NCBI GenBank assembly: GCA_965655095.1
Contig: OZ296650.1
Span: 116,932,001 to 116,996,000, forward strand
From: Haplodiscus bocki
Taxonomy: Eukaryota
DNA: 64,000 nt
Direction: 5' to 3'
Shown here: piece after piece, positions 1,378-50,922 of the stretch
Numbering within the stretch: position 1 is the first letter of the stretch
How the letters are laid out: every line of letters starts with the position of its first letter
Notes under the pieces: model-generated
Told to the model about the DNA's origin: nothing
The model's database searches: none
The model's input: the letters and a program-made list of their open reading frames with translations, nothing else
Made by a program: the position numbers and the translations under genes

Positions 1378-1706
1378 TATTAGAGGGTTCTTGATCATCA
1401 GATCCGATTGAGATTGAGAAGCCGTCCTGCAATGCTCCGAATCTGTTGCTTCCAGATGATCCCTGGCTAGATGTTGGTCCACTTGAGTTATTCTTCTGAC
1501 TTGTGCCCACGCTGCCTTTGCTCCACGTGCTACGGTTGCCCCAATGTTTCCCGTTCCAAACCCACCGCCTAGTTTCACCTCCAAGCCTCTAGTTTTGACA
1601 GTTTTGTCTAAAAGCATTCGAATATCTGTTTGCCTCCCTGAATTTGACCCGCCAGTTTGTGGTTGCCATTCTTGCTGTAAAGCTGGTCCATTGTTGCCAC
1701 CAAGCC
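1378..1706 (-). pseudogene. EIF4G: eIF4G exon: MIF4G-MA3 linker, with a frameshift in the C-run at 1539-1542
   Basis: Acceptor tttcag|GG at 1706. Reads QQEWQPQT..., then after the shift TWSKGSVG...SNRFGALQ, matching eIF4G SWGKGSSG...NRFSALQ. Phase is compatible with the exon ending at 2476. The donor position is approximate. Confidence 0.75.
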
Positions 1707-2475
1707 CTGAAACGATGAGTTCATTCATCAAAATAAAAATCTCCAAGCGACCAAAGTTTTTTTTCATTACGCAGCCATTTTACTAATTGAAACCGAATCA
1801 CGAATCGAATGTTTCACTACCGATCGCGCCATTACTTGCAATCTGTATATTTATTTTTAAAAACATTTCACAAAAAAGTTTCGAAGATACTGTCATGAAA
1901 ATTTTGATGTACAACGCAGCTAATAATACTTTTTCATTATTTGAACTGTAATAGAAACTGATGAAAGTTGATTTACTTTCAATTATCAACAAAGAGCCAC
2001 CGGTAAATTATTTCACATGTTCTAGAGGTCTCATCATAAATGTCTGTGGATGAGAACATATCTTTAGAAAGCAATTATTCAAGAGTTGATTTATCAAGTC
2101 CATTTCTATCTTTAAATTTTTCAGTTGATTATAAATTGATTTTTTGTAATTTCCGATGGCGAAAACAATTTAAATAGTCGAGACAGCAACCGTCGTAAAG
2201 GGGAGAATTGCGCGAATTACTTCTTGAAAAAGACATTTTCCTTTTGCAACTTTTCATGACATATTGAAAAAAATTTAACTTGTATTTTAACTTACAGTAT
2301 TTGAGGCCTTTCTGGCCCCGGCGAACATTTGATCAAAAAGAAAGCTCAAAACAAAGGATTTCAGGATTCGAAAAAAAATTGAAATTTTTTAGTTCAATTA
2401 TAAGGTAAATTTAAAATTAATAGAAATGGACATCATTGATGGCAATACAAAATACAAATGCCGTTAAAGACTAAC

Positions 2476-2635
2476 GATTATTGTGCTGGAACTTGCGATC
2501 ATTGTAAGAATTTTGTCTGTCGTTTCTGTTTCTGCTTTTCATCATCTCAGCTTGCACTTTTACCTGAATTTCTTCTCTGGCCTCTTTGTGGAATTGATCA
2601 ATTGTCTTGAGCGCCGATCCTTTCTTCTTTAATAG
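2476..2635 (-). pseudogene. EIF4G: eIF4G exon piece immediately C-terminal to MIF4G (5' end lost)
   Basis: LKTIDQFHKEAREE resembles eIF4G PKTIDQIHKEAEMEE. Phase-1 donor C|gttagt at 2475. Confidence 0.8.
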
Positions 2636-3129
2636 GGGTGTGCGATGCATCAAATTTCAGTGCAGTACGTTGCACTTTGTATTGAGGTACAAAAGTTTCA
2701 ATGCAATGATTTTCTATAAAGTTTCTTCTACAATATATCTTGGATTTTTGGTTATCCTGCTACGTCAAGTATAAAATCGTGCAACATTTGCCTAGAACCC
2801 AATTACTGATATGTGACTTGTTTTTATGCGATCGACGATTATATTCTGAAAATTAGAATGTTGCTGGTTTTGTTTCATCGACAGATTTCATTGATTCCAC
2901 AATGTGATGTTTTTATATGAAAACTTTTTTTTCGACTGGAGTGAGAACATTAGGATCAGCTTCACAATCGCCCTCCCCTCCCCCGAAAGCACCTAGTTCA
3001 TAATCACCACCCCACGAGCACCAAAATCGAGATTGAATTTAGTTAGAAGACATGGTTACAGGCAACATAAATTCGTTTACAAATAGAAATAGGCCATCAA
3101 CAAGGAAGACCAATGAGATTAGAATCGAA

Positions 3130-5110
3130 TCTTGAAAATTAACTGGAGAGTTTGAAAAGATTGCCGGATCCAAAAATATATGTGTCTGTAAAAATTTTGA
3201 AAAACGATTTGCCTTCTTTTTCAGATAATTTTTCGAAGGTGTGTGAGGGTATACCACGATCTTGTAGCAAACTGTAAGCTCGCCTTACTTTCTTCGTAAT
3301 TGAGAATTTGTTGATTGTGTTTTTTGAGTGAAATGGTGTTGTTTTGCCTTTAGTCGGACTTTTAGTCTGGGGATAGCTAGAATCTGTACTGCTGTATTTC
3401 AGATCAAAAGTTTTCTTTCTAATGCTGCTGAAGACTTCACGAAAAACTCCCGAGATAAGCAACTCAAAAAAGTGTATATATTGCGTTCATGGAAAAAGTC
3501 GGTTACCGAATCCATGTGATGCCGGAAAATTATGGCGCGAGTTATCATGCTTTGAATGTCAATAATACTTCCTCAGAACTTTTAAACGTGCACCCGTACA
3601 CCATTACGCCGTAGGTAATAATAGGTTCAACGAGCGGGTTGTATAACATTATTGGTGGTTTTCGGTAGAAGTAGAGTCTTATTTTGTACATAACAGCACA
3701 GAACAATGTCAACTTCGATCGATTTTTTTCTTTGATGTTCATCGAACTTCAAATTTTTTTCGAAATCAACACCAAGGTATTTGCAGTACCGTTAACTTTC
3801 GAAATCGGGATTGTCAGCAAATCACAGTTATGGTCTCGGCCAAGCAATATAATTTCGCACTTTTTACTATTTAAATTGAGTTTGTTATCTCTAAACCATT
3901 CAACAGCCTCATCAAGGGTATTTTCATTTAAAAAACACTGTCCTCCTACGAACAAAAAATACTAGTGCATCAGCATGTACGTCCATCTGGCAGTCGTGAG
4001 AGACATACGGTAGGTCATTAAAAAAAACAATAATGGGCCGAGGACTGATCTTTGAGGCACACTACAGACTACATTGCTGATACCTGTTTAATTCACTTTT
4101 TTTACAACGTGATGTTGACGATTCCCTGGGTAGTTGGAAATCTGATTGTAAAGTATACCATAATGATTACCATAAATTACCAAAGTATTTAAGGGTCAAC
4201 AATAACAAACGTTTTTTCAACTCGACAAGACATAACTTTCCACCTAGCTTATTATCGAAGCTACTTCTGATTGATTCGTTTGAGTCAGATATTGCATTCA
4301 CGCAGCTAAAACTTGCCTAATGGCCAAACTGTTTAGACTATAAGATATTTGATTTTGCTGGCAAAATTGACCTTTTTCAAGAACGAGATATTTTCAGATA
4401 TTTTGCAGAGTGCACTACGAAGACTAATCGTGCGATAATTTTCAGCTTCGTCAAATTTGCCTGACGTGTGTACGGGAGTAAAATTCAATATTTTCCAGAA
4501 TTTGAAAAAAGTATGTGTTTCGATGATTTGATTGAAAATCTCTGAAAAATTTAATCGCCGGTGCAAATAAAATTTTCACTGAATATGTGATCGTGTGCGC
4601 ATGAAGATTTGTATTGCATGTTGTTGATTGTTTTCATTGTTTCCTGGGCACAGGTAGGCCGGAGTGCAAGCGAATGTAATCTTCCTTCCTCATGGAACAT
4701 TGGTTTTTTGCAATTATCAAACTTTTTGACAAGATCAGGTTCAACATTAGTGAGTTAATCAACTTTTACAAACTGAGCACTTTGCATTTGCGAGCATTCA
4801 CTGGCATGTTCGTGTTAGGATATTTGATTGCAGACTTCAAAAAATCGATTACGCGTTGGAGTGGCCCTTTATTGATTGCGAAAAAAGTTGTTTTTAGCAT
4901 TTCTAATGTCAATTCTGGTCGCATCTTGAAATTTGCTGTACTTCCTATTGTTTCAATCGTTGAAAAAATAATCCAGGGCCGACACGCATACTCGCGCTTG
5001 TTTAGAGCGTTTTGAACCCATTGGTCATCCACGAATTTTTGAGTTTTTTCTTCGAACATTATTGGGCGGGTGCGTAGCTATCTAGTTTTTCTCGAACAGT
5101 TTTTGTAAAA
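3130..5110 (-). mobile_element. Degenerate non-LTR retrotransposon (CR1/L2-type) reverse transcriptase
   Basis: Collinear motifs RPWI; FNQIIETHTF..WKI..TPVHTSG..ENYRTISL; VPQRSVLGP; HADA (YADD-like); EWFRDNKLNLNSKKC; YNPLVEPIITYG. Multiple frameshifts and stops. Confidence 0.85.
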
Positions 5111-5930: not shown

Positions 5931-6849
5931 TTTTTAAGCGTAAAGAAACAATAGTTCTTCAAATAGATATGTTATGTAGGTTATGGATTTATGCAGTCAA
6001 GCTTGGTAGCAATATTTTTTATATCTTTGCATGTTAAACCCCCTGTCCTTTAAGTACGGAGCCGAAGTTTGACTGCATTCTAAACTCGACCAAGACAAAC
6101 AAAAGCTTCCTAGGAAAGGCAATTCAACTTAGCGGTTTAAACTACCGATGTCAGATCTCTGATATCATTACTTCAAAACGTGAAAAACAGATACTGAAAT
6201 CACTGAATGTTTGCGTTTTGAACAATCGGATGAACTATAGTGAGGAGCTGCTTGTATACCTAGCGTCTTTATGTTCATAAATTATGCTTTTAGAGTGTTG
6301 TACGGTTAATTTCGACATAGATGCACTTTGAAGAAAATTCCACCCATGTGGTGCGGACTAAAACAGATTATTTTGTTTATTTTTCAAAAATCAGGAAGTG
6401 TAAAATTTCATATTTGAAGGCATTTTTTTATCGAATCATCTTCATAAAACTACTTTCCATTTTTAAAGTAAGTAAAACCGAGATCAAAAGCTATTTTTTT
6501 AAGAACTTTGGACAAAAACTGATTAAAGAATGCTAATCTGTTGAGATCATTGCTGCCATTTTTGGCAAATATTATGCTCCTTGGCAAAATGATATAAATT
6601 CAAAAAAGGTTCCTTTAAATTTCCCCATCTTCCGTAATTTGAGAAAGGATGCCAGGTAGGCATTAAGCGCTAAGAGTTGGACGCTTAAGACAATTGGAAT
6701 TGTGCAATTTTGGCCAAATTTGACTCATAATTGGGAAAAAGCGGAATATGAAATTCATCGCTTCACTTTACCGCTCAGCCAGTCCGACTTGCCAAGAAAA
6801 AAAGTAAATTCTATAGGCCTTAAATCAAGCTTCATGCCTAAAAACATAC

Positions 6850-7497
6850 ATCATTGACCATAGGGCGTTGTCTGCGCAACCAGTCTGGAGCAAAGTCATT
6901 TCCAAAACCGCCCAAGGAAGAGTTTCCATATTTGTGCGAAGACTGTGAGAAATCACGGAAGTCATTGACTGGCACGTTATCAGCTAATGGCTGCAAGAAC
7001 TGAGGACTGTGTGTCACGATATCTTTGAATTGCGGTTCTTGTGTGAAAGGCGCTTTCTTGAGAGAACCTGCTGCCTTCTGTTTACTCAACAAAAAATCTC
7101 TATCGTAAACTTTTCGGCCGTTGCTTGATGATTTCCCAATACTTGCCGCCGTTGGTGTACTGTCGTTATCAACCACAAATTTGGTTGCCGTGTTTCCATT
7201 CTCAGGAGTATCGTCAGGAGGTAAATTGTCAAAAATAATATTGCCCTTTGATGAAAATTTCTCACATTCATTGACACGCAGCTCTAGGTCCACCACACGA
7301 TTTGTAAGTAAGCGAATTTGATTGTCTTTTTCAGATAATTTATCAAGCAAATCAATCAAAATTCCCTTTAGATGAGGATTATCTAACGAATTCAATGCTT
7401 TTTGAGCGATAGTTGAGTAATGTTCATTCAAACTTGGTTGCACAGTGGGACAAACGACATTATGCGTGAATGTAGGTGCTTGTCCGGATATGAAGGA
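6850..7497 (-). CDS. EIF4G: Chimeric eIF4G exon copy 1: N-terminal piece + LINE-ORF1-like segment + eIF4E-binding region
   Basis: Open 648-nt phase-0 exon (tttttag| ... |gtatgt). Contains RKVYDRDFLL (YxxxxLphi; compare KKRYDREFLL) and DFAPDW. Function is uncertain because the upstream exon is interrupted by a MITE. Confidence 0.75.
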
Positions 7498-7665
7498 CTA
7501 AAAAAAACACAATTCATTTCAAACAAAATTTCGTGTTTCTGAAACTAAATGTGTACATTTCATTCAAATGATATTTTCGAAAAGCTTGGTGGCAAATAAT
7601 CTAAAATGAATAGGGAAGCAAATAGATTCCAAAACTTTCATCCAATAAAAAGCCTAAGCACTCAC

Positions 7666-7707
7666 CATGTCGCGTGTTTGCGGATACATAGGCGCAAAAG
7701 TTGGATT
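7666..7707 (-). CDS. EIF4G: eIF4G N-terminal micro-exon (NPTFAPMYPQTRDM), copy 1
   Basis: 42 nt, tttcag| ... |gtgagt, phase 0. Identical in the duplicate while the flanking introns differ. Confidence 0.7.
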
Positions 7708-7771
7708 CTGAAACACGAACAATGTTACCATGAGTTCAAAAAGCATAAATGATAGAATTGGCAAAACTTAC

Positions 7772-8790
7772 GCCGGCAGGAAACAAATGTCCTTTATTTG
7801 CTAGGGCACTTTTGTTAACGAATGGCATCGGGTTCGCGTTTGTATAAGGAGTATTAAATAAGTGTGATCCAATTGGTGATGAATTCCCGGGTTGACGTCT
7901 CAGAGACATTCAGCGCTGATCAGCTCTGTTTCAGAATACTTTCAGGTCTGTTTCAGCGCTGTTCATTACCTGAAAATCTCTGAAACAGCGCTGATTTTTG
8001 AATAATTCAGAATGACAATTTTTGGTTAATTTTTGGTTTTCACTTTTTTCAAAATTTTTCTAAGTACCTGAATTCTGAGGCACACAATTCTGGTTTTCAG
8101 CCCAGTTTACAAAAAGAAGTGAGAGACAAAAGTTTACTTCTCCCTTTCCGTAGAGGACAAAGATATCTCACATACTTGAATTTTTGGGTTTACTGTTACT
8201 GCTCAAGTAACAAAACAGATATGGTTCAACTTTTCAAAAATATTTTTGCGTTTATAGGGGTAAAATTTCGAGATTATTCCAAGAAATTTGAGTCTTTGCT
8301 TTCAATTTGCAGAATTTTTACCTTTTCTTTAATACAGCATACCATTTTAATGACTACTTCGTGCGTTTTCAGCACTTCGGACTACGTTATCATATTTTGA
8401 TAGTCTCATCTACATGTGTAAATATCAGAACTGATTCATTCAGAGTAAATCACCGCTGAATCAGCGCTGTTCAGCGCTGAAAATCCAATGTTTCAGAGCT
8501 AAGAACATCAACGCTGAACAGCGCGGATTCAGAGCTGTTTCTCTCTGAAACAGCGCAGTTCAGCTCTGAAACAGCGCTGAATTTTTCAGTTCTGAACAGC
8601 GCTGATTCAGAGAACATCAAAGCTGATCAGCTCTGAAGCAGAGCTGATCAGCGCTGATGTTTATCATGTTCTCTGAATCAGCGCTGAAAAACGTCAAAAC
8701 TATGAAACAGCGCTGTTCAGCGCTGATTATCTCTGGGACTTCAACCCGGGTTAATAGAGTGAACTTGGACCGCTGATTGAACTTGGAATA
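7772..8790 (-). pseudogene. EIF4G: eIF4G N-terminal exon (...GHLFPAG) copy 1, interrupted by a MITE
   Basis: Donor |gtaagt at 7771. Homologous to the uninterrupted 47227-47376. Split by the insertion at 7886-8750. Confidence 0.65.
7886..8750. mobile_element. 865-bp non-autonomous TIR DNA transposon (MITE), CACTA/CMC-like
   Basis: Imperfect ~48-bp TIRs (CCCGGGTTGAcGTCtCAGAGA ... TCTCTGGGACTTCAACCCGGG), many subterminal CAGCGCTG palindromes, and a 2-bp TT target duplication consistent with the empty site at ~47336-47345. Confidence 0.9.
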
Positions 8791-8796
8791 CACGTT

Positions 8797-9585
8797 TAGC
8801 GCGGTCTTATGTCATTTGGTACGTAATAAAGCAAACAACGCGACTATTTTTCAGCCAGGCATGTTGTGTATGTTGTGAGATGAGATTTAGAAGTATGCGC
8901 TAGCTAAAATGGTGAAATTTAATTTTTCTGAGAAATGCATTCTGCTTGTTTTCTCAATGGTGTAGAATTTCTCGAACCAACTGAAAAACTATTTCAAGAA
9001 GACGACGCGTTAAGCAACAACCCATTATATAGACATGCTGAAATGATTTAACTATGCAAAGAGAAAGAAAATTCAACTGTCCGAAAGATTTGAGAGGTAA
9101 TCAAATTCGATTATTCATTTGTTCCCATTTTCTTCAGCATATTGCCCCAATATATACGTTTAGCTGCTCAACGGATACTGTCTCAAACGAAGTACAGTGC
9201 TTTTATAAAAGGTTCGTACTTCTATCTGTGCAAAAAGTTTTAGACAACACGAGTTTCCGCCGAAAAAGAATAAAAATCTCAAACATTGCAAAAGTTTCTT
9301 ATAATTTCACCTAGTTTACGGTGATGATGAAACTTCTAGATATATTATACAGCAGCTTGAAGACTTTGTGTCCGCATGTATTAAAATAGGATATTGCATC
9401 ACAACCACAACGCTTTATGTTTTCAATTCTAAACTTCGGTACATTTTATTTACTCACAAGATGCCCTTCATCTACCGATTGCAGTAAGAAGTTGGCAGTT
9501 CCTTGAGTGCAATTCTTCAAGAAATAAGAACCCTCATATATATTCAGATTAAGCAAAAAAATTTCAGGAAATGCTGGTTCTTGGG
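8797..9585. repeat. ~0.8-kb dispersed repeat, copy 1 (probable non-autonomous transposon)
   Basis: Homologous to 48016-48826 and 50025-50750. It starts gcggtcttatgtcatttg, whose reverse complement also occurs at ~47693-47709. Confidence 0.85.
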
Positions 9586-12204
9586 TTTTTTGAGCTGAAA
9601 AAATTTCATATTTCAGAAAACTCTAAATTTTTGGTCGAAAAAAGGCAGTATTTAGAACTATTACTCTTTTAGACGCATTCTACAAAACTTTTTCCTGATC
9701 AAAAAATTTTGCGGCAACATTGAAGAATCAGGTTTTTTTTTGCAAATAAAAATATATTTTGGTCGAAAAAAGGACTTCTGAAAACACATTACGATTTGTG
9801 ACGCACTCTAAAGCACATCACTGCAACTTGCCAGAATCATGTACTTGGCAAGTAAACTTGAAAAACAACACAGGCGGCGAATGAATTTTTTTCCATCATA
9901 TAAATATGGGCGGAAAATAATAGGAAAATAGGCTCATAGCTATCTGAAACAGGAAAATAATCCTAAAACATGGCGCTTTGAGCAGCGCAAACTATAACTC
10001 CAATCAAGGATTATCGCGAAGCAGTAGATTCTATGATTGATGGAATAAGTATTTACTGGGGCGAACCACAAGACTCAAGAGAATCGATGGTCAGGTTGGG
10101 ATAATGCATGAGGGCCAAAATTTCTAATCCTCGGGCAGAATCGACTTCGACAAACAGAGGGGACAGAGTAGCCAACTCAATGGGAAGCTAGATGAAGAAG
10201 CAGCTAGCACGAAAGTAGTCAGAATACTTTTCTTTTGATCAGGGCAAGCGGCGCAAAAGACAATATCCGACACAGATGCGAAGCTTTGCTTTTGCTTACA
10301 TTTGCGACAGAAGTGAGCAAGGATATCGACTAACTGCTCACAGACGAAAAAGGTTTGATTGTTGTTGTTTTCAAAATAAAAGATTCCATTGAAAAAAAAT
10401 ACAGTTCAATGAAACAGAACTTTCCGGCTCCTCTTTTCAATTGCCATACTAAAGCAATACTGGAGTTTGAACTGAGCACTTGATGGCCTCAATCCAACCA
10501 GTACTCTTCGAGAAAACTATCTTTAGAAAACACGCATTCAAAAATTTTTCTGATCTCAAAACACATGTGCAACTATTTCACGTGAGATGAAATGATTGAG
10601 AAGAGGTCGGGTCCACTTCTTCCCAGATTCCTTCGCATTGCCGGTTTTTGAAAGCGCACTGGGTGGCCGCAATCCAACCAGAAGTCTCCGAGAAAATCAT
10701 CTTTAAAGAGGGACGCAACTTGAAGAAATTCAAAACAAAAATGACATGAAAGGACTGGAACGGGTCATCCCGGCTACAGTGTAGGCTCCTCATATTGCAG
10801 AATTTTGAATGAGCGTTGGAGAGGCGCAATCACACCATCAGAAATCCAAGAAAAACAAGTTTGGAAAAGGAATTGAGTGAAAGCGTGGAATGTATGAGAA
10901 GAGACATCCCCGTTTCTCCAGACGTTCCCCATATTGCAGGCGCTTGAAAGAGCAACGGAAAACCACAGTTCAACCAGTAGTATTTGAGTGAAACAACTCT
11001 GAAGGACGCAAAGGGAATAGTTTTCTAATTGCAAAGTAAAAAGCAAGAAATTTCGCTTGAGAAAAATGAAATGGAACATCATGGCTTGTCTGAAGATTCT
11101 CAACTATGCGTGTTTTTGACAGAACAGAAACTGAAAAGAGAAAAATCAGAAACTGAATACAAGTATTCAAGCAATTAACCAATGTAGATGACATAAGCTT
11201 AGCTGGCGTAGCTTTACCATTTGGCACGTTTAACAATTGACATATACATGCCTAAAAAAGAAAGTCAAGACATGTCCCTACAATATCGAGCACCTTCGAA
11301 TTCGATGTTATGAAGAAACTCAGATTTTCTTTCAGAGGACATACTTTTCAATTTGAGCAAAACACGACGTCGACTCAACAATTTAAGTTAGGTAAAGAGA
11401 TAACTCCAAATTGCTAACAACTTTCAATAGGCAGCGCGGTCGGATTTCAGCTGAATCATCAAACACCCCAACTTTGCTGAAAAAGAAGTGTAAAGCCAAC
11501 GGAAATTAGTGAACACGATGCTGATGACAAACAAAACCCAGCATCGTTAAAGAAAAAAAGGAGTCCAAAAGTAGTCTCGGACAATGAATAAAAAAATCAC
11601 CTAAGCTTCGAAACTCTCCTGCCAAAAGAATCAGGAATTGCCGCAATCTGGAATCATTTGAATTACATCACAGAGGATCTCGAAATTGAAGAATTCATTG
11701 CTTACAAAGCAGCTAATGGTAGTAAGAAGCAACTTTCAACACCAAACACCACCGTAACCCACGAATCTGTCGTAAGAGAAACCACCGAAAAGAAGAAAGA
11801 AAATATCCTACTATTTGTAACTGAAATGAACCAAGAAAAGCGAACGCAGCCTTCATCAGACCGACGAAAAGCCCGAATAATCTTATGGAAATAATGAAAA
11901 ATGGCAATCTGAAACAGAGATATTATGCTCGAAAACACCCCCAAAGTGGAATAAAATTCTTCGAATCATTTATTAATGAGAATCATTCCAAAGCAGAAGT
12001 CTATGGTATGTAATGAGAGGAGAGTTCAAAGTTTCCTTGCCAATAGGGCGGGGGTGGGTAATGAACACGAAGACCAGATTTTTATTAGTCAATTCGCGGC
12101 TTGGCCGTTCTCAAAAGCGGCCCTTTTATTGTGCCTCGGTTGATTCTACAGTTGATATGGAGTAAGAAATACAAAAGACTGCTAAATTGAATTAATTGAA
12201 AACC

Positions 12205-12421
12205 AAGAAAGCTTGTCAAAACTATCAAACGCCTCAGTATGTAGGCTGGTAAGAATTGAGTCCAATTTAGCTGATCCTCGAATTTTCTTCACATTCAGAG
12301 CTCCAAGTTTTTCCAAAACATTCAAACCACGTCGTTTCTAGGCCAATATTGACGTTCCTTGATTTAATTCTGCTAAAAATTTTCCGATATGAGGTCCCGC
12401 TTTCATACCGTTCATTATTTT
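12205..12421 (-). pseudogene. EIF4G: eIF4G MA3 domain C-terminal exon remnant
   Basis: Acceptor ttttcag at 12422. KAGPHIGKFLAEL ... QLNWTQFLP resembles the MA3 end GKAASLLLEIL ... GLSWKEFLP. Contains stops. Confidence 0.5.
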
Positions 12422-12466
12422 CTGAAAAGGTATTGGAGAAGTTCCTGGAAAGGGAAATAGACTAAC

Positions 12467-13101
12467 GTTCGCAGGTCTTCTGTTCCATTCACCAACTTCG
12501 ACCACTTTATTGTTCGTGTGGTCTTTGATAACAATTTTGGGGCGAATAGGCTTAGCGGTGTTTACAGTGGATGATCCGGAGTTACTTGAATTGGCTGGCG
12601 ATTCAGATACTACCGGGACTCCCCCATTGCTCGGCACTGCAACAAGTGCCTGTGGTTGCTCATTCTGGTTTCGGTTGTATTGATGATTCTGTTGATTTTT
12701 GTTGTCTACATTCACCTGGGCTCCGCCTTGACTGCTCCCTGGCCCCGTGGTCATCATATGCATGCTAGTTGGAGGTCCTCCCCCTCCTCCCCCGACGTAG
12801 TTGGCCTGAGTGGGCTGTGCAGTTGAAGCTGACACGTTAACGTTGGGAGCGTTTGTGATGTACGCCGCCGGGTGTTGATTGTAATTCATCTGGTGAATGG
12901 AGCTGGGTGTTTCTTGTATTTGCTGGCTGTGGTGATTCATGGGATGACCATAGGGCGGCTGCGTTGGACCTCCAACAGCTCCAGAATTGACATTCGCATT
13001 AGGGTGCGGTGCTCTCATTAGGTGATGATGTTGCGGTGGCATATACATTTGTTGATTCAAGCCGGGCATATGTCCCTGATGAGGCATGAAAAATGCTGCT
13101 C
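12467..13101 (-). CDS. EIF4G: eIF4G Q/P/H-rich N-terminal exon ending in the PABP-binding motif
   Basis: Open exon (tctttag| ... |gttagt). KPIRPKIVIKDHTNNKVV resembles KRERKTIRIRDPNQGGKDI. Joined in frame to the upstream exon by a 62-nt phase-1 intron (13102-13163). Confidence 0.75.
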
Positions 13102-13163
13102 CTAAAGACAAGTCTTATAAACTTCTATTCAACAATTTACTATTCTTCTCATTGAATTTTAAC

Positions 13164-14433: not shown

Positions 14434-14436
14434 AGT

Positions 14437-14454
14437 TGGTGCAATGACAGTGAA
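14437..14454 (+). promoter_or_regulatory. Putative primer-binding site
   Basis: TGGTGCAATGAC starts 3 nt after the 5' LTR and resembles the tRNA-His-type TGGTGCCGTGAC. The tRNA identity is an inference. Confidence 0.55.
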
Positions 14455-40700: not shown

Positions 40701-42653
40701 GATTCCACATCCTCATTGACATTTTTCACAGAAGAACAAACCTGCGAGAAAATATTTGGCTCAGTGTTTTATCAACCTGCCTCTGACAAACATGTTGATT
40801 CCAACAACTAACCCTTCTACATGTATTCCTAAGGGATATCTCTGATGAATAATGAACAAATACTTTGAAAATTTTACAAAATTTAAACAATATTCATCAA
40901 TAAACGTTCATCTGTCTTTTGGAAAAAATTTTATTTCTTTCTGAAACAAAATCACCCCCTCACTGGCTTTTTTTGGCTCCGTGGCTTTTTAATCCCACTG
41001 GATTTCTGTCACTGGATTTCTGGCTAATTTGATTTCTGGCTCACTGGAATTTATCGTTCGATCAATGGATTTTTGGATTTTCGCTTTCTGACTTTCAATC
41101 TCTGTTTCTGCAATTCTGTATTGTTCAGCATTATTCTGGATTCGATCTCACACTCTCCTGTTTTGTTTTTCTGGCTCTGTCAACCCCCGAACAAAACAAT
41201 ATCATTTTTCTTTGGAATTAATTTCACTCTACTTGTTGATGTTTTTCTGAAAGCTGCAATGAATGATTTTGTACCCAACTTTTCTTGTCATTGCTAAGTT
41301 AAAGAAACCCAATTGCAATCTCACCTCAATTTGGGTAAACTCTCACCGCTCACACTCCTTCGCACCCTCTGGGTCATTCAAATTACTGCTGCGTTGCAAG
41401 CACAAACTCCATGCGCAAATTAGTGTGAAATTGTTCCAAACAATATGATTTTGGACTCTGTTTACCAAACTTATAAACTCGTAAAAAGTCTTTTTGTTAA
41501 AAAAACAAAACTCATAAATTCTTCGTGTAAATTTGATACAAGTTTTTTGTATTCGTTTCATAAACCCAACCCTTACAAATTTATAAAGTGCTACCCTTGT
41601 AATCTCAAGTACTTCGCAAATCCCCCCATATTTATTTTCCTCAAATTATCATAAATTTTAGTCTTATTCATGATATGACATAAAAAATAATGCAATAATG
41701 TTTTGTCTGTCCAAATCAAACAAAAATCACACTGGAAACTTCTCTAAAGTACCATCTGAAATTCGACAGAATGAAAAATTTTGATCTAACATTCTGAAGG
41801 TGATTCGATTTCGAAGAAAAATTTCTGTAACCCAGTTTCAGAGATAAAACTGAGAAACTGAAATTCCAGCAAGTTTCAACACTTTCTAGTCACAACTAGT
41901 CACATTTTTTTCACTCTTCTTTCATACCTGCATGACTTTTCTTCCAACTTTTTCCGGCAACGAAAGCACAGTGAACATAGAAATAAGTTTCGTGACTATG
42001 GACTTCGAAGAAATCAAAGAAATTTTACTTTGAATGAACTAAAAGTCTAAAGAACAGCTCATTCTGTGGAGAACTCGAGAACTTGGACTAATTTGCTGAT
42101 TTTGCCCCCTTCTCAACTCATAAGTGTGAACTGACTATCAAGATAACTTGTTGATAAACCCAACTGATCTTTGGTGACCACCTCAGTATGTTACACTCCG
42201 TTATTAATGTTAACTGACTTGTAACTAATTCATAGTACGTCATCAAAGTGAACTGTCATGTTTTTCATTCAAGTCAACTTATTCAAGTGAACAACAGAAC
42301 AAAGTGAGAGTCTCCTGTGTCGAAGCTCATCAAATTAAAGTTAAACTCTGAAACTTTCGAAAGAATTTGAAATGCCCAATAAACTGAATTCAATCAACTG
42401 AGATAGCTAATTTATGATTATTCGCGCCTAATTAAGAGTCGAACCCTCAACATTTACTTCGAAAAAGTTGTCTAACATACTGAGAACTCCTGTAAAATGG
42501 AAAAATTATAAAAAATGAACCTTTCTAGAACTGCCTGACTTTATTGACTTTAATAAAAGGCTGATGATACGCAAAAGTGAAAACCCCCTGAAACGTGCTA
42601 AACTTTTATGAGCAAGCTCTGAACTTAAAATTTTCAACTAAAACCCTGTCGGT

Positions 42654-42937
42654 TGTAATGCTTATACATTTAGAGAAGATATTCCTGAAGTATCATCGGA
42701 CAAAAAGTAACTTGTTATATATTCCTTACTTTTGACTTTTGTAGATGTTTATGATATAGATATCAACTTAGAGTTGAAGTAACATTGAAGTAAAGACTAG
42801 TCGTTTTTCTCTCGGGAAGTATTGAGAAATTTTAGGATATATTAGCTTACCCAAGTAACATCAAGTCAAAGCAAGGCCTACTTGTAGTCTTAACTTCAGT
42901 AACAAAACGCAACAGATGCTCTTAAAAAGTTGATGCA
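42654..42937 (+). repeat. 3' LTR (284 bp)
   Basis: TGTAATG...GATGCA; collinear with the 5' LTR, with roughly one site in five different by eye. Confidence 0.9.
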
Positions 42938-44323
42938 GCTTGAACAATCAAGTTATTAATCTAATAAAGCATGCGGCTTACACAGGTTTAATCTGAAAGT
43001 TAGTCACAAATTGAGTCGACTTAGCGCGTTTGTGTTTCCGTCTTAGCACGTTAAACAAGATATTTGAAACACGATCTTTGCAACATAAAATGCGGCGAGT
43101 ACTTTCACACACTTTGAGGTCCAATACTTGCCAGCCGACGCCATAATCAAGTATATATTACATTTTTCATCAGATAGGAAAATTGAAATCATCACAATTT
43201 TGAATGACATTAATTGAAACTAATTATCAAAAGGTAACTTTGATACCTTTCAATTTGAGCCATAACAGACGCGTTTTCTGAGAATTAGGGGCTCAGAAAG
43301 ACGCATGAGGTTCAAAAATTCCACTATTCAATCAAAGATAAAACAAGCCCAATACCCAACATATGAGGTGATTCTCGGACATCCATTCCAGAGGATGGAG
43401 GATACCAACCAAACTATAAATCTTGTCACATGCACAGATGAGGACGCTAAGGAATTTTTTGCTTGCCGCCACATTTTGCAAAAAATTCATTTTGAATGAA
43501 TTTCAAATAAATAACGAAGTGATTTCAGAATGCTTGATTCAAATATTTGGCGAAACGTTGAATGATTTTCAAATATAATCCATTAAATTGAAATTTGTCT
43601 TGAAAAAATGTGCGGAAAAGAAAATAGAGTTGCCTTTTAATAACCTGAAATATTGAGAGCATGGCACTCAAATGAATGATGACAGCAAGACTTTAATTAA
43701 TTTTAGCAAAAAAAAATATGTATCGGAAATATATATGCATGTGAACTTGGACCAATTTTTGCTTCTGTAACTACAGTGACAGGCAGACACCGCGAAAATC
43801 TGCTGCGAGCAGAAAACAGCAGACTTTACCATTCACAGCAGATTGAGCAGAATGGAAAAATCTCTCTTGCTTATGTTCTGATTTTCACAATAACCAAAAA
43901 AGTCTCGTCTGCCCATACACTGAAAGAAAATGTGACTGAAAATTTTGACGTACACAAAAATACTACAAGAAAAATGAGCTCAAAAATATTCAAAACGGTT
44001 CATGAATTGATAATTTTTGGTTGGTGAGCATTTCTTGCGTTGCAATCAATAAACTCAACAATTTTGGAGGAAATTTCCAATAAGCAGATTTAATTTTGGG
44101 CAGCAGCAGAATTTCGGTTTGAGAGCAGCATATTTTCGAGATGTATGGTGACAGGCTATTTTCAAAAAATAGCGTCAAGTTCAACGTCCATTGAGCTACT
44201 CTTGAGTGACCCGGTCGCAATCTACTGACTAATTAGAGCCTTTTGTTGTATGATGAGAATTCTTTGTATAAAATGGTACGTGCAAGGCAAAAAAGCAAAA
44301 TTGTAGCGCGTAAGTTTCCTCAC

Positions 44324-44891
44324 CTTGATTATCTTGCGCAGATTTATCATCAGGGGGTCGGTTGGCAAATTCCATTTTTCTGTCACAGGCTGGCTCTTTG
44401 CTTTTTCCATGCTGTTTGCGATCACTTGCAGCACTGACGTCCGTGTCTAGGTCGATGCTGGGCTTTGCTGCCAGAATTGGCTCCACCCCTTTGGCCGATT
44501 TCTCCGGCACAAAATCCTTCACCTTGTCATAATCTACTTTAGATAAATCGCCGGTGTTATGTGAACCAAAAGAGGAAGAATTTACATCGGTCAAGTTTTG
44601 GGAGTTCTGGACGGGGGCATCTATATGACCGTTAACAACAGGTGTCGTCGTCGATTCAGCGGTTTTATTCTCGTCTAGTTTGGTGTTTATGAAGTCCTGT
44701 TTTCTCTTCGATTTCCAGGAATTTCCTGATTCTGTCAGTCGCATGTCCTGGTTTTGCATATTCGTCGTGAACTGCATTCTAGTTTGCGTGTTGTGGGATC
44801 CGCGATCACTTCTGAAGCTGTTGCTTCCTCCGCCTTGCAAATTGTTGCCGGAGCCCATTCCACTTTTTCCTCTCGAATTTGTTGCGCCGCC
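44324..44891 (-). CDS. EIF4G: Chimeric eIF4G exon: pre-MIF4G region fused in frame to an acidic/low-complexity segment
   Basis: ctttttag|GGC ... G|gtgagg, open. DMRLTESGNSWKSKRK resembles DIKLNKAEKAWKPSSKR, but the ILNKLT start of MIF4G that should follow is absent. Confidence 0.7.
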
Positions 44892-46301
44892 CTAAAAAGT
44901 TGAGAATCCAAAATTGTGCAAAAGAAGATAGGTTAAAAAGGCGTAATTCGAAAATAATGCCAAAACATAGCAGAATTGCATTGAAACTTTTTCTTGAGCC
45001 ACCTTTTTTCCAGAAAGACTACTAGACACATTCTATGGCAAGTTTGGCGCATAAATTTCGCTGTGCAAATTTGCTAATGGTTCAATCGGCAAATTTCATA
45101 TTAAAAAATCTTGAATGTTGAATGATTTTGCTGCCATACAAAATATGGGCAGAAAATACCAGCTTTGCAAACCATCTCAAATATTTGTCAGTTACACTTT
45201 TCCAGAGGTCTTGTGCTTTTAGAATGTTAAAACCGCCCAGCTAACGAAAACAGTACGTTTGTACATGATGCATCAGAAACCTTCATAAGGTTTTGAATTT
45301 TAATGTAGCCAATTTGTATCTCTGTATTCAACATTATCGAACTGACCTAATTTATAACTTTTCATTGCTTCTTATAGATGTGAATCAGTGCTAAATAATG
45401 TGAATCAGTACTAAATCTAAAAGCGATTCCAAAAAGTAACTTATGAACGTTTTTACCGTACCTAGGCATCATTAAAAATGAAATACGTTTTCTCAGTAGT
45501 ACAAGATGCACAAAATCAAGACAAATCTGGCTATGAATTTCCACCGATTCAGGCAATTATTCATGAAAGGAATGCCAACTTAGTGGTTCAAACTAGCGAT
45601 GTCAGATCTCTGATATCAATACCTCAAAACGTGAAAAACAGATACTGAAATCACTGAATGTTTGCGTTTTGAACAATCGGATGAACTATAGTGAGGAGCT
45701 GCTTGTATACCTAGCGTCTTTATGTTCATAAATTATGCTTTTAGAGTGTTGTACGGTTAATTTCGACATAGATGCACTTTGAAGAAAATTCCACCCATGT
45801 GGTGCGGACTAAAACAGATTATTTTGTTTATTTTTCAAAAATCAGGAAGTGTAAAATTTCATGTTTGAAGGCATTTTTTTATCGAATCATCTTCATAAAA
45901 CTACTTTCCATTTTTAAAGTAAGTAAAACCGAGATCAAAAGCTATTTTTTTTAAGAACTTTGGACAAAAACTGATTAAAGAATGCTAATCTGTTGAGATC
46001 ATTGCTGCCATTTTTGGCAAATATTATGCTCCTTGGCAAAATGATATAAATTCAAAAAAGGTTCCTTTAAATTTCCCCATCTTCCGTAATTTGAGAAAGG
46101 ATGCCAGGTAGGCATTAAGCGCTAAGAGTTGGACGCTTAAGACAATTGGAATTGTGCAATTTTGGCCAAATTTGACTCATAATTGGGAAAAAGCGGAATA
46201 TGAAATTCATCGCTTCACTTTACCGCTCAGCCAGTCCGACTTGCCAAGAAAAAAAGTAAATTCTATAGGCCTTAAATCAAGCTTCATGCCTAAAAACATA
46301 C

Positions 46302-46949
46302 ATCATTGACCATAGGGCGTTGTCTGCGCAACCAGTCTGGAGCAAAGTCATTTCCAAAACCGCCCAAGGAAGAGTTTCCATATTTGTGCGAAGACTGTGA
46401 GAAATCACGGAAGTCATTGACTGGCACGTTATCAGCTAATGGCTGCAAGAACTGAGGACTGTGTGTCACGATATCTTTGAATTGCGATTCTTGTGTGAAA
46501 GGCGCTTTCTTGAGAGAACCTGCTGCCTTCTGTTTACTCAACAAAAAATCTCTATCGTAAACTTTTCGGCCGTTGCTTGATGATTTCCCAATACTTGCCG
46601 CCGTTGGTGTACTGTCGTTATCAACCACAAATTTGGTTGCCGTGTTTCCATTCTCAGGAGTATCGTCAGGAGGTAAATTGTCAAAAATAATATTGCCCTT
46701 TGATGAAAATTTCTCACATTCATTGACACGCAGCTCTAGGTCCACCACACGATTTGTAAGTAAGCGAATTTGATTGTCTTTTTCAGATAATTTATCAAGC
46801 AAATCAATCAAAATTCCCTTTAGATGAGGATTATCTAACGAATTCAATGCTTTTTGAGCGATAGTTGAGCAATGTCCATTCAAACTTGGTTGTACAGTGG
46901 GACAAACGACATTATGCGTGAATGTAGGTGCTTGTCCGGGCATGAAGGA
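46302..46949 (-). CDS. EIF4G: Chimeric eIF4G exon copy 2 with eIF4E-binding motif YDRDFLL and LINE-ORF1-like insert
   Basis: Open 648-nt phase-0 exon; splices in frame to the 47121-47162 and 44324-44891 exons. Confidence 0.8.
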
Positions 46950-47120
46950 CTAAAAAAATCACAATTCATTTCAAACAAAATTCCGTGTTTCTGAAACTAA
47001 GTGTGTACATTTCATTCAAATGTTATTTTCAAAAAAACTTGGTAGCAAACAATCTAAAACGAATAGGGAAGCAAATAGATTCCAAAACTTTCACCCAATA
47101 AAAAAAGCCTAAGCACTCAC

Positions 47121-47162
47121 CATGTCGCGTGTTTGCGGATACATAGGCGCAAAAGTTGGATT
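47121..47162 (-). CDS. EIF4G: eIF4G N-terminal micro-exon, copy 2
   Basis: 42 nt, canonical AG/GT, phase 0. Confidence 0.7.
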
Positions 47163-47226
47163 CTGAAACACGAACAATGTTACCAATAGTTCAAACAGCG
47201 TACACGATAGAATTGGGAAAACTTAC

Positions 47227-47376
47227 ACCGGCAGGAAACAAATGTCCATTATTTGCTTGGGCACTATTGTTTACGTATGACATCGGGTTCGTGTTTGTAT
47301 AGGGAGTATTAAAGAAGTGTGATCCAATTGGTGATGAGTTTATAGAGTGAACGTGATTGAACGTGGAATTTATTTT
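47227..47376 (-). CDS. EIF4G: eIF4G N-terminal exon (NSSPIGSHFFNTPY...GHLFPAG), copy 2
   Basis: Open frame with a |gtaagt donor; the 5' boundary is uncertain. Confidence 0.6.
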
Positions 47377-47482
47377 CTAGATCCAAGGCTCATATTCTAA
47401 ACAAAAACGTCTTTAGCACTGAATTGAGCTGCTTCTTTAATAATTTATTGCGGAACTTATCTTCAGTTGATATTGGGCCGCC

Positions 47483-47612
47483 TTAGGTCCACCACACGAT
47501 TTGTAAGTGAACAAATTTGATTGTCGTTTTCAGATAATTTATCAAGCAAATGCGAAGCAAGTAAAATTCCCTTTAGATTAGGATTATCTTACGATCTTCT
47601 GATGCTTTTTGA
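47483..47612 (-). mobile_element. Free, decayed copy of the LINE-ORF1-like segment found inside the chimeric exon
   Basis: taggtccaccacacgatttgtaagt...cagataatttatcaagcaaat...aaaattccctttagat matches 46737-46857, with indels. Confidence 0.85.
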
Positions 47613-48015: not shown

Positions 48016-48826
48016 TTATATTTGGCGCAGTCTTATCTCATTTGGTACGTAATCAAGCAAACAATGCATTTGATTTTCAGCCACGCATATTGTGTATGTC
48101 GTGAGATAAGATTTAGAAGCATGTGCTAGCTAATATGGTGAAATTTAATATTTCTGAGACATATGTTGCTTATTTTCTCAATGACGTACTGAGCCAACGT
48201 ATTTTATCGAACCAACTGAAAAACTATCTAAAGGAGACGACGCGTTAAGCAACAACCGATTAAACAGACACGCTGAAAAGATTTAACTTTGGACAGAAAT
48301 AAATCCAACTGTCCGAATGAGTTGAGAGCTAATCAAATTCGAATATTCATTCGTTCACATTTTTTTCAGTATAATGCCCCAATTTATACGTTTACCTGCG
48401 CAACGAATGCTGTCCTAAGCAAAGTACAGTACTTTTTTAAAGAGGTTCGTACTTGCATCTGTGCAAAAAGTTTCGGACAAAAAGAGTTTCAGCCGAAAAA
48501 GAATGCAAATTTCATACACATTGCAGAAGTTTCTGAGAACTTCATCCAGTTTACAATGATGATGAAAATTCTAGATTTATTATGCAGTAGTTTGAAGACT
48601 TTGTTTACGCATGTATTAAAATAGCAGATTGGTTTTGCATCACAAACACAACTTTTCATGTTTTCAATTCCAAACTTCGATACATTTTGTTTACTCACAA
48701 GATGCCCTTCATCTACTGATTGAAGTCAAAAGTTGGCAGATCTTCCAGTGCAATTTCTTGAGAAACAATAACCCCCACATGTATTCAGATTAAGCAAAAA
48801 TTCTTCAAGGAATGCTGGTTCTTGGG
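48016..48826. repeat. ~0.8-kb dispersed repeat, copy 2
   Basis: Homologous to 8797-9585 and 50025-50750. Confidence 0.85.
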
Positions 48827-48960
48827 CAGTGTAAACATTAAGGAGCTGGCACTAATGATTGAATAGGAATAGTATAGCGCGTGTTTTTATTGCAACTTGT
48901 TCAAGAAAAGAAGTGTAACATCATCTCTGAGAAATAAATAATAAACAATTAATGACTAAC

Positions 48961-49292
48961 AGCTCTGAGATCAATGATATCTTGAAGCATGAATCGGATT
49001 CTGCATGAAGTCTGTTTGCTTAAGACCATATTCTGGATGCGTTTGAAGTATTGACCCATCAAGTTTCGACAAGTCTCATGGTCCATTTTTTGCCCAACTG
49101 TAGTCAACAGATTGCACATGCATTCCAAAGAATCTTCGTCTTTCGAGTTTTTCAAAAGCAACTCGATGGACGAATGCATGATTTGTTCAGTCAAAAAGTC
49201 CACTTTGAACAACTCGCCAATGAATCTTTTATTTTCAAGAGGTTGTTTCCATCTCAAGACTATCTAATTCTTCTTCTTTTTCCCCTCCTTTC
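48961..49292 (-). pseudogene. EIF4G: eIF4G MIF4G domain C-terminal exon (frameshifted near 49240)
   Basis: RFIGELFK..EDSLECMCNLLTTVGQKMD..RIRFMLQDIIDLR closely matches MIF4G. Donor |gttagt at 48960. The upstream EKEEELDSLEME is in another frame. Confidence 0.92.
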
Positions 49293-49481: not shown

Positions 49482-49667
49482 GGTGCTTTTATTGATGACA
49501 GCTTTTTTCTCTTCGTTTTCTTTTTCATCGTCCTTCTCTCGCTGAAACTCCTGCTGACATCTGTTGAGCAACTGGCGTCGAAAAAGAGCAATTACTGGAT
49601 CTGTAGGAGGGTTTTTGTACGAGCGCTTGTCCACTTTGGAACGCTTAGCTTGTTGTTCTTGAAGCCG
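49482..49667 (-). CDS. EIF4G: eIF4G MIF4G middle exon
   Basis: FRRQLLNRCQQEFQREKDD resembles FRKLLLNRCQKEFEKDKDD. 186 nt, ttatag| ... |gtaagt. Confidence 0.9.
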
Positions 49668-50024
49668 CTATAACAAATATCAAAATATTAGCTCGTAATT
49701 TCGAAATTCAGCGCATTGCCGTTTCCCAATTCCTCAAAAATAGACCCTTAGCATCAACAATTTTGGTTTAATATAGTACTTTGAATACGAAAGCTTACAA
49801 TAAATCGAAACACTTCTGTGAATTTAGATACTTTCAAAACAGTAAACTTGGTTTTTAGTTAATTTGCCCGAGCAAGAAGGTTGATGGCGCTTGTAAAACC
49901 ATTTCTTGCTGCAGTCAAGCTATTCGAAGCAGTTAGCACGAGTTTGGCTCCTTTTCAAATCTGACATAAGGGAAGTTCAACCTGTGAAAGCTGTAGTTTC
50001 GAACTACATGCGACATAAGCCGAG

Positions 50025-50750
50025 TTATATTTGGCGCAGTCTTATCTCATTTGGTACGTAATCAAGCAAACAATGCAATTGATTTTCAGCTACGCATATT
50101 GTCTAGGTCGTGAGATAAGATTTAGAAGCACGTGCTAGCTAAAATAGTGAAATTTAATATTTCTGAGACATACGTTGCTTGTTTTCTCAATGACGTACTA
50201 TTTTTCGAACCAACTGAAAAACTACCTAAAGGAGACGACGCGTTAAACAACAACCGATTAAACAGACACGCTGAAAAGATTTAACTTTGGACAGAAAAAA
50301 AATCCAACTGTCCGAATGAGTTGAGAGCTAATCAAATTCGAACATTCATTCGTTCCCATTTTTTTTTCAGCATAATGCCCCAATTTATACGTTTCCCTGC
50401 GCAACGAATACTGTCCTAAGCGAAGTACAGTACTTTTTAGGAGGTTCGTAATTGTATCTGTGCAAAAAGTTTCGGACAAAAAGAGTTTCAGCCGAAAAAG
50501 AATAAAAATCTCAAACATTGCAAAAGTTTCTTAGAATTTCAACTAGTTTACAGTGATGATGAAACTTCTAGGTATTTTATACAGTAGCTTGAAGACTTTG
50601 TGTCTGCATGTATTAAAACAGGATATTGCATCACAACCAAAACGCCTTATGTTTTCAATTCCAAACTTCTATACATTTTAATTATTCACAAGATGCCCCT
50701 CAGCTACCGATTGCAGTCAAAAGTTGGCAGCTCCTTGAGTGCAACTCTTT
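50025..50750. repeat. ~0.8-kb dispersed repeat, copy 3
   Basis: Homologous to copies 1 and 2. Confidence 0.85.
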
Positions 50751-50754
50751 GAAG

Positions 50755-50922
50755 GTCAACTATGTAGTGTCTCTTCCTTTCTTGCTCCTTTTTCTTAAAA
50801 TAAAAAAAAACCTTCGTCTATTTTGGGAGAACCCCTACTGTGCAGTCAAGCAAAATGGGTCACGTTTGTGAACTATCGGTTCATTCAAGTGAGTAATTAA
50901 ATGAACTAAACGTAAAAGTCAA
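50755..50922 (-). pseudogene. EIF4G: Second remnant of the MIF4G intron and following exon start
   Basis: cctactgtgcagt...cacgtttgtgaac.atcgg...aagtgagta.ttaaatgaactaaac is shared with 49265-49465. Confidence 0.7.

Follow-up and report, generated by a model that had tools for sequence, protein, structure and literature searches.

The 64,000-nucleotide (nt) stretch of DNA analysed here (contig OZ296650.1 of Haplodiscus bocki; below, the window) carries pieces of an eIF4G gene, all of them on the minus strand from 50.9 to 1.4 kb, in an order that differs from that of intact eIF4G genes. The window is identical to part of contig ctg80362_38.88x_l (93,446 bp) of ERZ26859043, a metagenome assembly in ENA (adding 1733 to a window position gives the record coordinate), has a GC content of 36% and contains no runs of N. 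Comparison with intact genes in related assemblies and with sister loci in the same assembly suggests that the window is probably a decayed mosaic, built by nested and largely tandem duplications and deletions, all in one orientation, from the 5' two-thirds of an eIF4G1/3-type gene. The locus would code for no working eIF4G and is one of several fragment loci in the genome.

When distant eIF4G proteins were used as queries, only the C-terminal half of the MIF4G domain was recognised in the window. A hidden Markov model (HMM) of full-length eIF4G, made from 25 sequences, added the middle of MIF4G, two 4E exons and, marginally, two post-MIF4G pieces. Exon-sized open reading frames (ORFs) of related eukaryotes in other ENA assemblies led to intact, compact and canonical genes: L004/L005 (ERZ25071366, ERZ25878734), L006/L007 (ERZ25071359) and L009 (ERZ25074608). 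The piece order is canonical in all of these references, and L009, the closest intact relative, was used as a ruler. Its pieces are numbered 1 (n1), 2 (n2), 3 (m), 4 (m2), 5 (pre-4E, q), 6 (4E exon, E), 7 (pre-MIF4G, P), 8 (MIF4G-N), 9 (MIF4G middle, a), 10 (MIF4G C, b) and 11/12 (post-MIF4G, h), with MA3 following 12. The named eIF4G homologues closest to the window are scattered over the animals (sea star, crinoid, scallop, sturgeon, Nematostella and Sycon); Acanthaster XP_022104164 has the 4E-binding motif, MIF4G, MA3 and W2 in that order. Proteins with multiple MIF4G domains that topped the search of representative sequences were set aside as unrelated gene models from fish, plant and fungus.

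Read 5' to 3' on the minus strand, the window has the order [9 10][1'-TE-6 7/3 4 ... 5/1 2][1'-TE-6][11 12], where a slash marks a join, 1' is the eIF4G start codon with 31 amino acids (aa), and TE is a 68-aa segment of a multi-copy ORF (positions are given in Table 1). The first four blocks are strictly descending in order when measured by tblastn with the L009 exons, and none of the confirmed pieces is inverted. Permuted order and a single strand had both been proposed in an earlier reading made from the letters alone (the sequence-only reading), and both are borne out by the comparison with an intact gene. The window covers only the N-terminal two-thirds of eIF4G, with the 4E exon as the one duplicated piece.

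The individual pieces are readily matched to canonical eIF4G. Exon b is 80.6% identical to L009 at the aa level and matches the MIF4G chains of eIF4GII and eIF4G1 in PDB at about 1e-28; exon a is flanked by splice signals (acceptor ttatag/, donor ACC/gtaagt). The true eIF4G N-terminus (MPGQAPTFTHNVV...) is present together with a Q/P-rich region, and ORF f2 contains a motif of the type bound by poly(A)-binding protein (PABP), KPIRPKIVIKD, at 12553-12521. Both copies of the 4E exon, in ORFs 7497-6841 and 46949-46293, are 79% identical over 122 aa to L009 and contain the eIF4E-binding motif Y-x4-L-phi as KVYDRDFLLS (7113-7084 and 46565-46536). In ORF 44891-44232, piece 7 is followed by m and not by MIF4G-N as in the intact genes. 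This ORF has an acceptor (TTTTTAG/G) before 44891, a donor (CAAG/GTGAGG) at 44324 and, in m, a PAM2-like motif DYDKVKDFVPE at 44534-44502. Its second half was considered as the extreme N-terminus of eIF4G; this assignment was dropped because L009 shows it to be the mid-N-terminal region.

Ten of the twelve items listed in the sequence-only reading were recovered in this way; the exceptions are an 'MA3 end' and a 'W2'. The interval assigned to MA3 is the non-coding repeated block X/T1, which recurs in sister loci and gives no MA3 signal, and no signal of W2 was obtained with domain HMMs or by tblastn with the exons of relatives. The best match of the MA3 and W2 domain HMMs over the window had E about 2, tblastn of the whole window with L004, L006, L007 and L009 exons gave none at E<0.01, and in the intervals claimed for the two domains the best tblastn match had E=0.036 for 12 aa. 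Neither HMMs nor references from close relatives detected the N-terminal half of MIF4G (profile positions 1-67) in the window; a marginal MIF4G-N HMM match at 47844-47665 was read and judged spurious. The MIF4G (HEAT-1) domain is thus incomplete, with Pfam positions 68-201 of 203 only, and the earlier view that nearly every domain is present does not hold, as MA3, W2 and this half of MIF4G all went undetected in the window. A Pfam search of about 35 window ORFs returned MIF4G and a weak rve match only, and an Rfam search of the whole window returned no match.

Joins, border repeats and sister loci

Compared with L009, the joins lie inside canonical exons and not at exon borders. The q/n1 join in ORF f1, at about 13326-13294, reads CCCGAACAAGAACCT, a sequence that either parent (...GCCCGAAGAAGAA... 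or ...GCCCGGACAAGCACCT...) could have supplied, with imperfect microhomology of about 12 nt; the frame is preserved as well. The 1'/TE and TE/6 joins share at most 2-3 nt with the comparison sequences, the TE parent of TE/6 being represented as protein only. Larger repeats sit at the borders of the blocks: the duplicates A and B, and the repeat T in its three copies (T1, T2 and T3). Two of these copies, T3 and T2, enclose the a-b segment, whose homology to the sister locus L003 (window 50031-48795) stops within about 30 bp of those borders. The junction between the flank of exon b and T is common to the window and to a second sister locus, L010, where T abuts the start of the 1'-TE-6 block.

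The locus has the marks of segmental or tandem duplication: duplicated blocks in the same orientation, direct repeats at block borders and paralogous copies elsewhere. It lacks the intron loss and exon-border joins of a retrocopy or of a copy derived from circular RNA (circRNA), as shown by the a-b and E'-P' introns, which are still present. Because introns are retained and joins lie inside exons, an RNA intermediate is not indicated. On this point the sequence-only reading was right: it had argued for DNA-level shuffling without retrocopying from kept introns and splice sites, and the a-b intron, the acceptor before 44891, the donor at 44324, the joins within exons and the microhomology at the one comparable join agree with it.

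Sister loci in the same assembly show that the joins are not peculiar to the window. L010 (ctg75856_36.98x) is 76-93% identical to window 32.4-6.2 kb and colinear with it over more than 20 kb. The q/n1 and 1'-TE-6 joins recur in it, as does the loss of 1 nt at the beginning of the pre-4E exon; beyond the 4E exon the two part, and L010 goes on with the second half of exon b, T and then block X once more. L011 (ctg43915_21x) keeps the canonical single exon pre-4E-ETCWENKTLA-4E in unrearranged form. L003 (ctg87883_65.8x) retains exons 9 and 10 intact, with no other eIF4G within 10 kb on either side, and L001 has exon 10 alone, the MIF4G fragments of both being related to those in the window; L001 was considered as a related species, which was dropped because it belongs to the same assembly. 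L008 (ERZ26859043 ctg88795_63.23x) has a divergent MIF4G-N and exon 9 at 9932-11011, in the last 5.7 kb of a 689-kb contig, with nothing like the 4E exon upstream. This pair would be a second paralogue of eIF4G type or else the missing portion of the real gene, truncated where the contig stops. Beyond the window and L010, at least four further contigs carry eIF4G fragments (at least six in all).

The multi-copy ORF that supplies the TE segment is represented by P0169, of about 266 aa, whose 90% cluster contains 46 sequences. It has no Pfam or PDB match, presumably resembles the ORF1 proteins of long interspersed nuclear elements (LINEs), and is probably a transposable-element protein. The first 75 or so residues of this type of ORF are fused to eIF4G exons at several loci, and residues 7-75 are joined in frame to the 4E exon. 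When the 4E ORF was used as a protein query, five variants, P0162-P0166, turned up in addition to the window's own ORF; the two whose sample was checked, P0162 (L010) and P0165 (L011), are in this assembly. The fusion partners vary (1'+TE+4E, TE+4E, TE+pre-4E+4E, pre-4E+4E and a deleted form), and the TE part stops at ...NLPP in P0163, P0164 and the window form. Together with the sister loci, these variants show that the arrangement is no isolated case and that duplicated, rearranged and decaying eIF4G fragments form a family in the genome.

Two further observations concern these contigs. By coverage, those bearing eIF4G sequences (L001, L003, L008, L010, L011 and the window) form three groups, 21x, 37-39x and 63-66x; differences in copy number, haplotypes or the presence in the sample of more than one related genome could lie behind this. 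In a metagenome assembly, contigs at differing coverage could be paralogues, haplotypes or co-assembled relatives. In L011, a called gene of 386 aa at 10914-12074 adjoins the eIF4G fragment and has a weak match to PF21738 (double-jelly-roll-like); it may be a virus-like or Polinton-like remnant.

Lesions, gene conversion and selection

Frame-breaking lesions are found in three pieces, exon b, the pre-4E exon and h2; the window has neither the colinear exon order nor the open reading frame of an intact eIF4G gene. Compared with L003, exon b lacks 1 nt and, separately, 17 nt; a TAG in frame lies between the two deletions, although use of a new and poor acceptor would avoid it. In the pre-4E exon, 1 nt is missing just after the acceptor, and the canonical phase runs into TGA; this deletion is common to L010, with L011 and L009 intact. 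In h2, frame -2 (1707-1570) matches residues 1-45 of L009, and frame -1 (1540-1379) matches residues 56-107; the counterpart in L009 is a single ORF. The ratio of nonsynonymous to synonymous substitution (dN/dS) of exon b relative to L003 is 1.04, and identity to L003 is 91.9% for exon a, 93.3% for exon b, 96.8% for the intron and 90-92% for the flanks. Judged by these values, the MIF4G piece evolves neutrally with respect to its paralogue.

Duplicates A and B show only 3 differences over 6200-7400, which includes both ORF and intron (99.75% identity over 1.2 kb), and are about 9% different over 7400-7885. As the near-identity reaches into the intron, it marks a conversion tract and not coding constraint; purifying selection was considered as its cause and dropped, the intron being equally identical. 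A second conversion tract is seen in f1, which is 99.6% identical to L010 within a 1.4-kb alignment of 93% identity overall.

Origin of the permuted order and alternative explanations

The order of the blocks and the repeats at their borders suggest a series of events. The piece map, the joins, the lesions, the paralogous loci and the insertions are observed directly; the sequence and mechanism of the events, and the loss of function, are deduced from them. The backward joins (10 through T to 1', 7/3, 5/1, and 2 through X/T to 1') would be remnants of tandem duplications of different spans, and the forward joins (1'/TE/6, 3/4 and 6 to 11) would be deletions. Two of the backward joins run through copies of the 0.8-kb repeat T and so fit unequal crossing-over between them, with one T lying after exon b and another upstream of the gene. 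The microhomology at the in-exon join fits template switching during replication or microhomology-mediated end joining. Insertion of the 28.8-kb long terminal repeat (LTR) retrotransposon and of a small inverted-repeat element, and gene conversion between copies, would have come later. Repeated tandem duplication with loss, which the sequence-only reading had offered, comes close to this scheme.

Events of this general kind have been described. Non-allelic homologous recombination (NAHR) and template switching (fork stalling and template switching, FoSTeS, and microhomology-mediated break-induced replication, MMBIR) produce discontinuous duplications mixed with deletions (PMC2583991, PMC2621351). 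The window resembles these in its duplications and deletions, at least one microhomology join, direct repeats at borders, gene conversion and later decay of fragments. It differs from FoSTeS/MMBIR events, which often include inversions, in having one orientation throughout, and its events are old, layered and spread over several loci, so that individual events are beyond reconstruction. Permutation by duplication is an accepted route to circularly permuted proteins (PMC3320104), and here too tandem duplication with outer loss would put a downstream part first without inversion (10 before 1', 7/3, 5/1); that route, however, yields one working permuted protein, whereas the window has nested permutations, lesions and missing domains. 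The pieces are like canonical metazoan eIF4G1/eIF4G3 in their aa identity to L009 (79-81% for the 4E and MIF4G C exons) and in sharing its intron positions and splice signals. They are unlike it in being permuted, in the absence of MIF4G-N, MA3 and W2, in the duplication of the 4E exon and its fusion to foreign sequence, and in their broken frames. Processed and circRNA-derived pseudogenes also have coding segments that are not colinear, but the window differs from them by its introns and its joins inside exons.

Several points weigh against the decayed mosaic that we favour. The two deletions in exon b sum to 18, and the frame is restored after them. All five joins within ORFs (P/m, m/m2, q/n1, 1'/TE and TE/6) keep the frame, and ORFs of 172-258 aa are long for a GC content of 36%, which hints at some selection or a recent origin. 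The 4E part has dN/dS of 0.31-0.33 among paralogues (p=0.004 and 0.03). The model requires many events. An intact eIF4G1-type gene, which the sequence-only reading had recommended looking for, is present in canonical form in the assemblies of relatives but was not found in this one, in a search that covers called ORFs of similar length, as do all the protein searches. Finally, the contig ends 1.7 kb past the left edge of the window, on the downstream side of a minus-strand gene, and the map rests on the window only, the contig continuing for a further 27.7 kb on the 5' side.

We weighed four other explanations, taken here in decreasing order of the weight given to them. The first, which we regard as unlikely, is that eIF4G fragments were captured and dispersed by a mobile element, either T or the element of the multi-copy ORF, so that the window is a cluster of cargo-carrying insertions. 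It would account for the a-b segment, which with its intron lies between direct copies of T and loses its homology to L003 so close to their borders, as well as for the in-frame fusion of residues 7-75 of an ORF with 46 cluster members to the 4E exon, the four further fusion variants with different partners (P0163-P0166, with P0165 in this assembly) and the spread of fragments over at least six contigs. Around T and the fragments, however, we recognised neither terminal inverted repeats nor target-site duplications nor poly-A, and T, like the multi-copy ORF, has no Pfam or PDB match. In addition, colinearity of more than 20 kb between L010 and the window is that of a segmental duplication and not of an element-sized insertion.

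A wrong path of the assembler through the repeats T, A/B and X, in a gene that is really canonical or in a simpler duplication, is somewhat less probable still. The contig comes from a metagenome assembly, repeats lie at several block borders, and wrong traversal of direct repeats yields just such a permutation of blocks in one orientation; moreover, the contigs of the window and of L010 both end about 6-9 kb past the 4E exon. Against this, several joins lie within single ORFs over a few hundred bases and have no repeat at the join, and the non-canonical neighbourhoods are short: 5.5 kb for b-T2-B-P', 7 kb for f-T1-A and 6 kb for A-h. Each of these would fit within a typical HiFi read, provided that the assembly is of HiFi type, as the names of the contigs suggest. 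Duplicates A and B have different flanks and diverge by about 9% upstream, and the LTR insertion has its own GTTT/GCTT flanks and an empty site in L011. Because L010 carries the same joins at 7-24% divergence, the joins exist independently.

Expression of some of the mosaic ORFs, with a residual or new function, seems to us improbable to the same degree. The candidates are the predicted 217-aa ORF, which would combine the eIF4G start, a coiled-coil-like segment and the eIF4E-binding motif in a small eIF4E-binding protein, and a putative truncated eIF4G made from the f-E-h exons. Copy B (ATG at 46943) and the L010 copy retain the eIF4G start codon and KVYDRDFLLS, and between A and L010 the 1'-TE-6 ORF is 96% identical compared with about 92% in the flanks; the low dN/dS of the 4E part and the frame kept at every join within an ORF point the same way. 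For the whole 1'-TE-6 ORF, however, dN/dS is 0.5-0.6, a value that is not significantly lower than 1. Stop codons interrupt the L010 copy ahead of the exon end, copy A has lost its ATG, P0163 is without the tyrosine of the motif, and the near-identity of A and B extends equally over the intron, as expected of conversion.

The last explanation, that of a gene stored in pieces and later joined by programmed DNA rearrangement or by trans-splicing with other loci, we consider very improbable, as we do its fuller form, an animal that has no colinear eIF4G1-type gene and would join dispersed, permuted pieces (the window, L003 and L008) in either RNA or DNA. Among the pieces in the window there is indeed hardly any redundancy, the 4E exon alone being duplicated, and they lie on one strand with splice signals kept; MIF4G-N was found at the end of another contig (L008), and no intact eIF4G1-type locus was found among the called ORFs. 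The pieces of one gene also lie in non-canonical DNA order in the micronuclear scrambled genes of ciliates, which by definition form a complete, undamaged and reorderable set; here MIF4G-N, MA3 and W2 are missing, the pieces are damaged, introns and ordinary splice sites are present, and related assemblies have normal genes. Joins inside exons delete coding sequence, the MIF4G piece evolves neutrally, diverged duplicate loci share the joins, compact canonical genes were found in all four related assemblies examined (five loci), and the closest named homologues are spread across Metazoa. We know of no system that joins pieces of an eIF4G gene in this way. The missing domains, the lesions, the neutral MIF4G piece and the junctions shared with L010 also speak against the earlier idea of one complete gene in permuted order, and nothing in the analysed sequence points to somatic unscrambling or trans-splicing.

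As a decayed mosaic, the locus would be an ordinary yet unusually clear case in which nested duplication, deletion, conversion and transposons turn a copy of an essential gene into a permuted mosaic, and in which intact relatives and sister loci let most joins be read base by base. It also calls for caution in annotating eukaryotic contigs in metagenome assemblies. Were the mosaic ORFs with an eIF4E-binding motif expressed, they would be new eIF4E-binding regulators. A host without a colinear eIF4G gene, or eIF4G fragments carried as cargo of an uncharacterised mobile element, would matter more if true.

Inserted elements and neighbouring sequences

The 'Gypsy' insertion of the sequence-only reading is a degraded Ty3/Gypsy-type LTR retrotransposon on the plus strand, in the intron that separates m2 from the pre-4E exon. 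Its direct LTRs of about 300 bp (14138-14438 and 42653-42942) are 80-85% identical and have TG...CA ends; the flanking GTTT/GCTT is taken as its target-site duplication, and in L011, the empty site, the sequences to its left and right adjoin directly. Remnants of reverse transcriptase (29454-30306) lie upstream of integrase remnants (32883-33212) on the plus strand, as found by tblastn with the element in L003; the ORFs are degraded, and Pfam gave only a weak rve match in the element. When the element is removed in thought, pieces 3, 4 and 5 are contiguous as in intact genes. Within it lies a tandem array (15809-26845) in which a 2.35-kb unit is repeated about 4.7 times with 88-96% identity; the ORFs in the units (110-280 aa) have no Pfam match. 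Tandem Repeats Finder is silent on this array, its unit being beyond the period limit of the program. L010 has only one such unit, so expansion of the array came after the split of the window and L010. The 865-bp element next to duplicate A, which resembles a miniature inverted-repeat transposable element (MITE), has internal short palindromic repeats and is absent at the same site in L010; its flanks suggest a 2-bp (TT) duplication.

Table 1. Features of the window, in 5' to 3' order of the eIF4G pieces, and corresponding pieces of the intact locus L009
Feature	Sequence	Position	Strand	Remarks
a', partial extra copy: 3' end of the MIF4G-middle exon and its intron, abutting T3	window	50759..50946	-	71-79% identical to 49259-49490
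T3, copy of dispersed repeat T (about 0.75-0.8 kb)	window	50025..50752	-	88.8% identical to T2, 86.6% to T1
Exon a, MIF4G middle (piece 9)	window	49482..49667	-	Pfam PF02854 positions 68-111, weak; HMM positions 844-884, E=1.6e-9
Exon b, MIF4G C-terminal half (piece 10), 5' part damaged	window	48952..49263	-	PF02854 positions 100-201 of 203, E=2.7e-22
T2, repeat copy directly downstream of exon b	window	48016..48826	-	
Degenerate 5'-end fragment of the multi-copy ORF (presumed transposable-element protein)	window	47477..47612	-	84.6% identical to 46730-46857; tblastn with P0168/P0169; DNA pattern search
Duplicate B: mosaic ORF 46949-46293 (1'-TE-6) and first 727 bp of next intron	window	45565..47340	-	97.4% identical to 6114-7885
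Fused ORF: pre-MIF4G (piece 7) 44891-44676, m 44675-44433, 3' part of m2 44432-44289	window	44232..44891	-	tblastn against L004, L006, L009
Ty3/Gypsy-type LTR retrotransposon, degraded	window	14138..42942	+	28.8 kb; flanks GTTT/GCTT; empty site in L011
ORF f1: pre-4E region (piece 5) 13674-13300 and, joined to it in frame, n1 (piece 1) from residue 6 on, 13314-13162	window	13162..13677	-	
ORF f2: Q/P/N-rich N-terminal region (piece 2)	window	12341..13114	-	54% identical over 224 aa to L009 3847-4479
Non-coding repeated block X and T1 (T1, 8795-9585)	window	8794..11543	-	recurs in L010 (twice) and L011, 85-92%
MITE-like element, 865 bp, between T1 and duplicate A	window	7886..8750		48-nt terminal inverted repeats (CCCGGGTTGA...), 88% complementary
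Duplicate A: mosaic ORF 7497-6841 (1'-TE-6)	window	6114..7885	-	start codon reads ATA
Post-MIF4G exon h1 (piece 11)	window	2474..2656 (match 2623-2474)	-	78% identical over 51 aa to L009 14276-14428; domain HMM E=0.01
Post-MIF4G linker exon h2 (piece 12, ...SNRFGALQD), two reading frames	window	1379..1707	-	L009 alignment
P0169/P0168 fragments	window	7404-7204, 46856-46656, 47588-47400		
n1	L009	2832-3014		start MAGQTPQF...; all L009 pieces on one strand
n2	L009	3847-4479		Q/P-rich with PABP-type motif
m	L009	7245-7520		
m2	L009	8527-8676		
pre-4E and 4E exon	L009	9899-10738		
pre-MIF4G and MIF4G-N	L009	11332-11829		
MIF4G middle	L009	12367-12636		
MIF4G C	L009	12987-13388		
post-MIF4G	L009	14243-14428 and 15405-15818		
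MA3	L009	from 18296		

Some minor features complete the picture of the window. Block X contains short imperfect tandem repeats, 62-65% identical, at 10454-11011. Between 51 and 64 kb there are many long minus-strand ORFs with no Pfam match, and an integrase-like remnant of a second LTR-type element lies at 57037-57979 on the minus strand. Window 44003-43224 (minus strand) corresponds to L002 12941-13720, for which a 259-aa product is listed, yet the segment has about 8 stop codons under the standard code; the gene call must have used another genetic code or be spurious.

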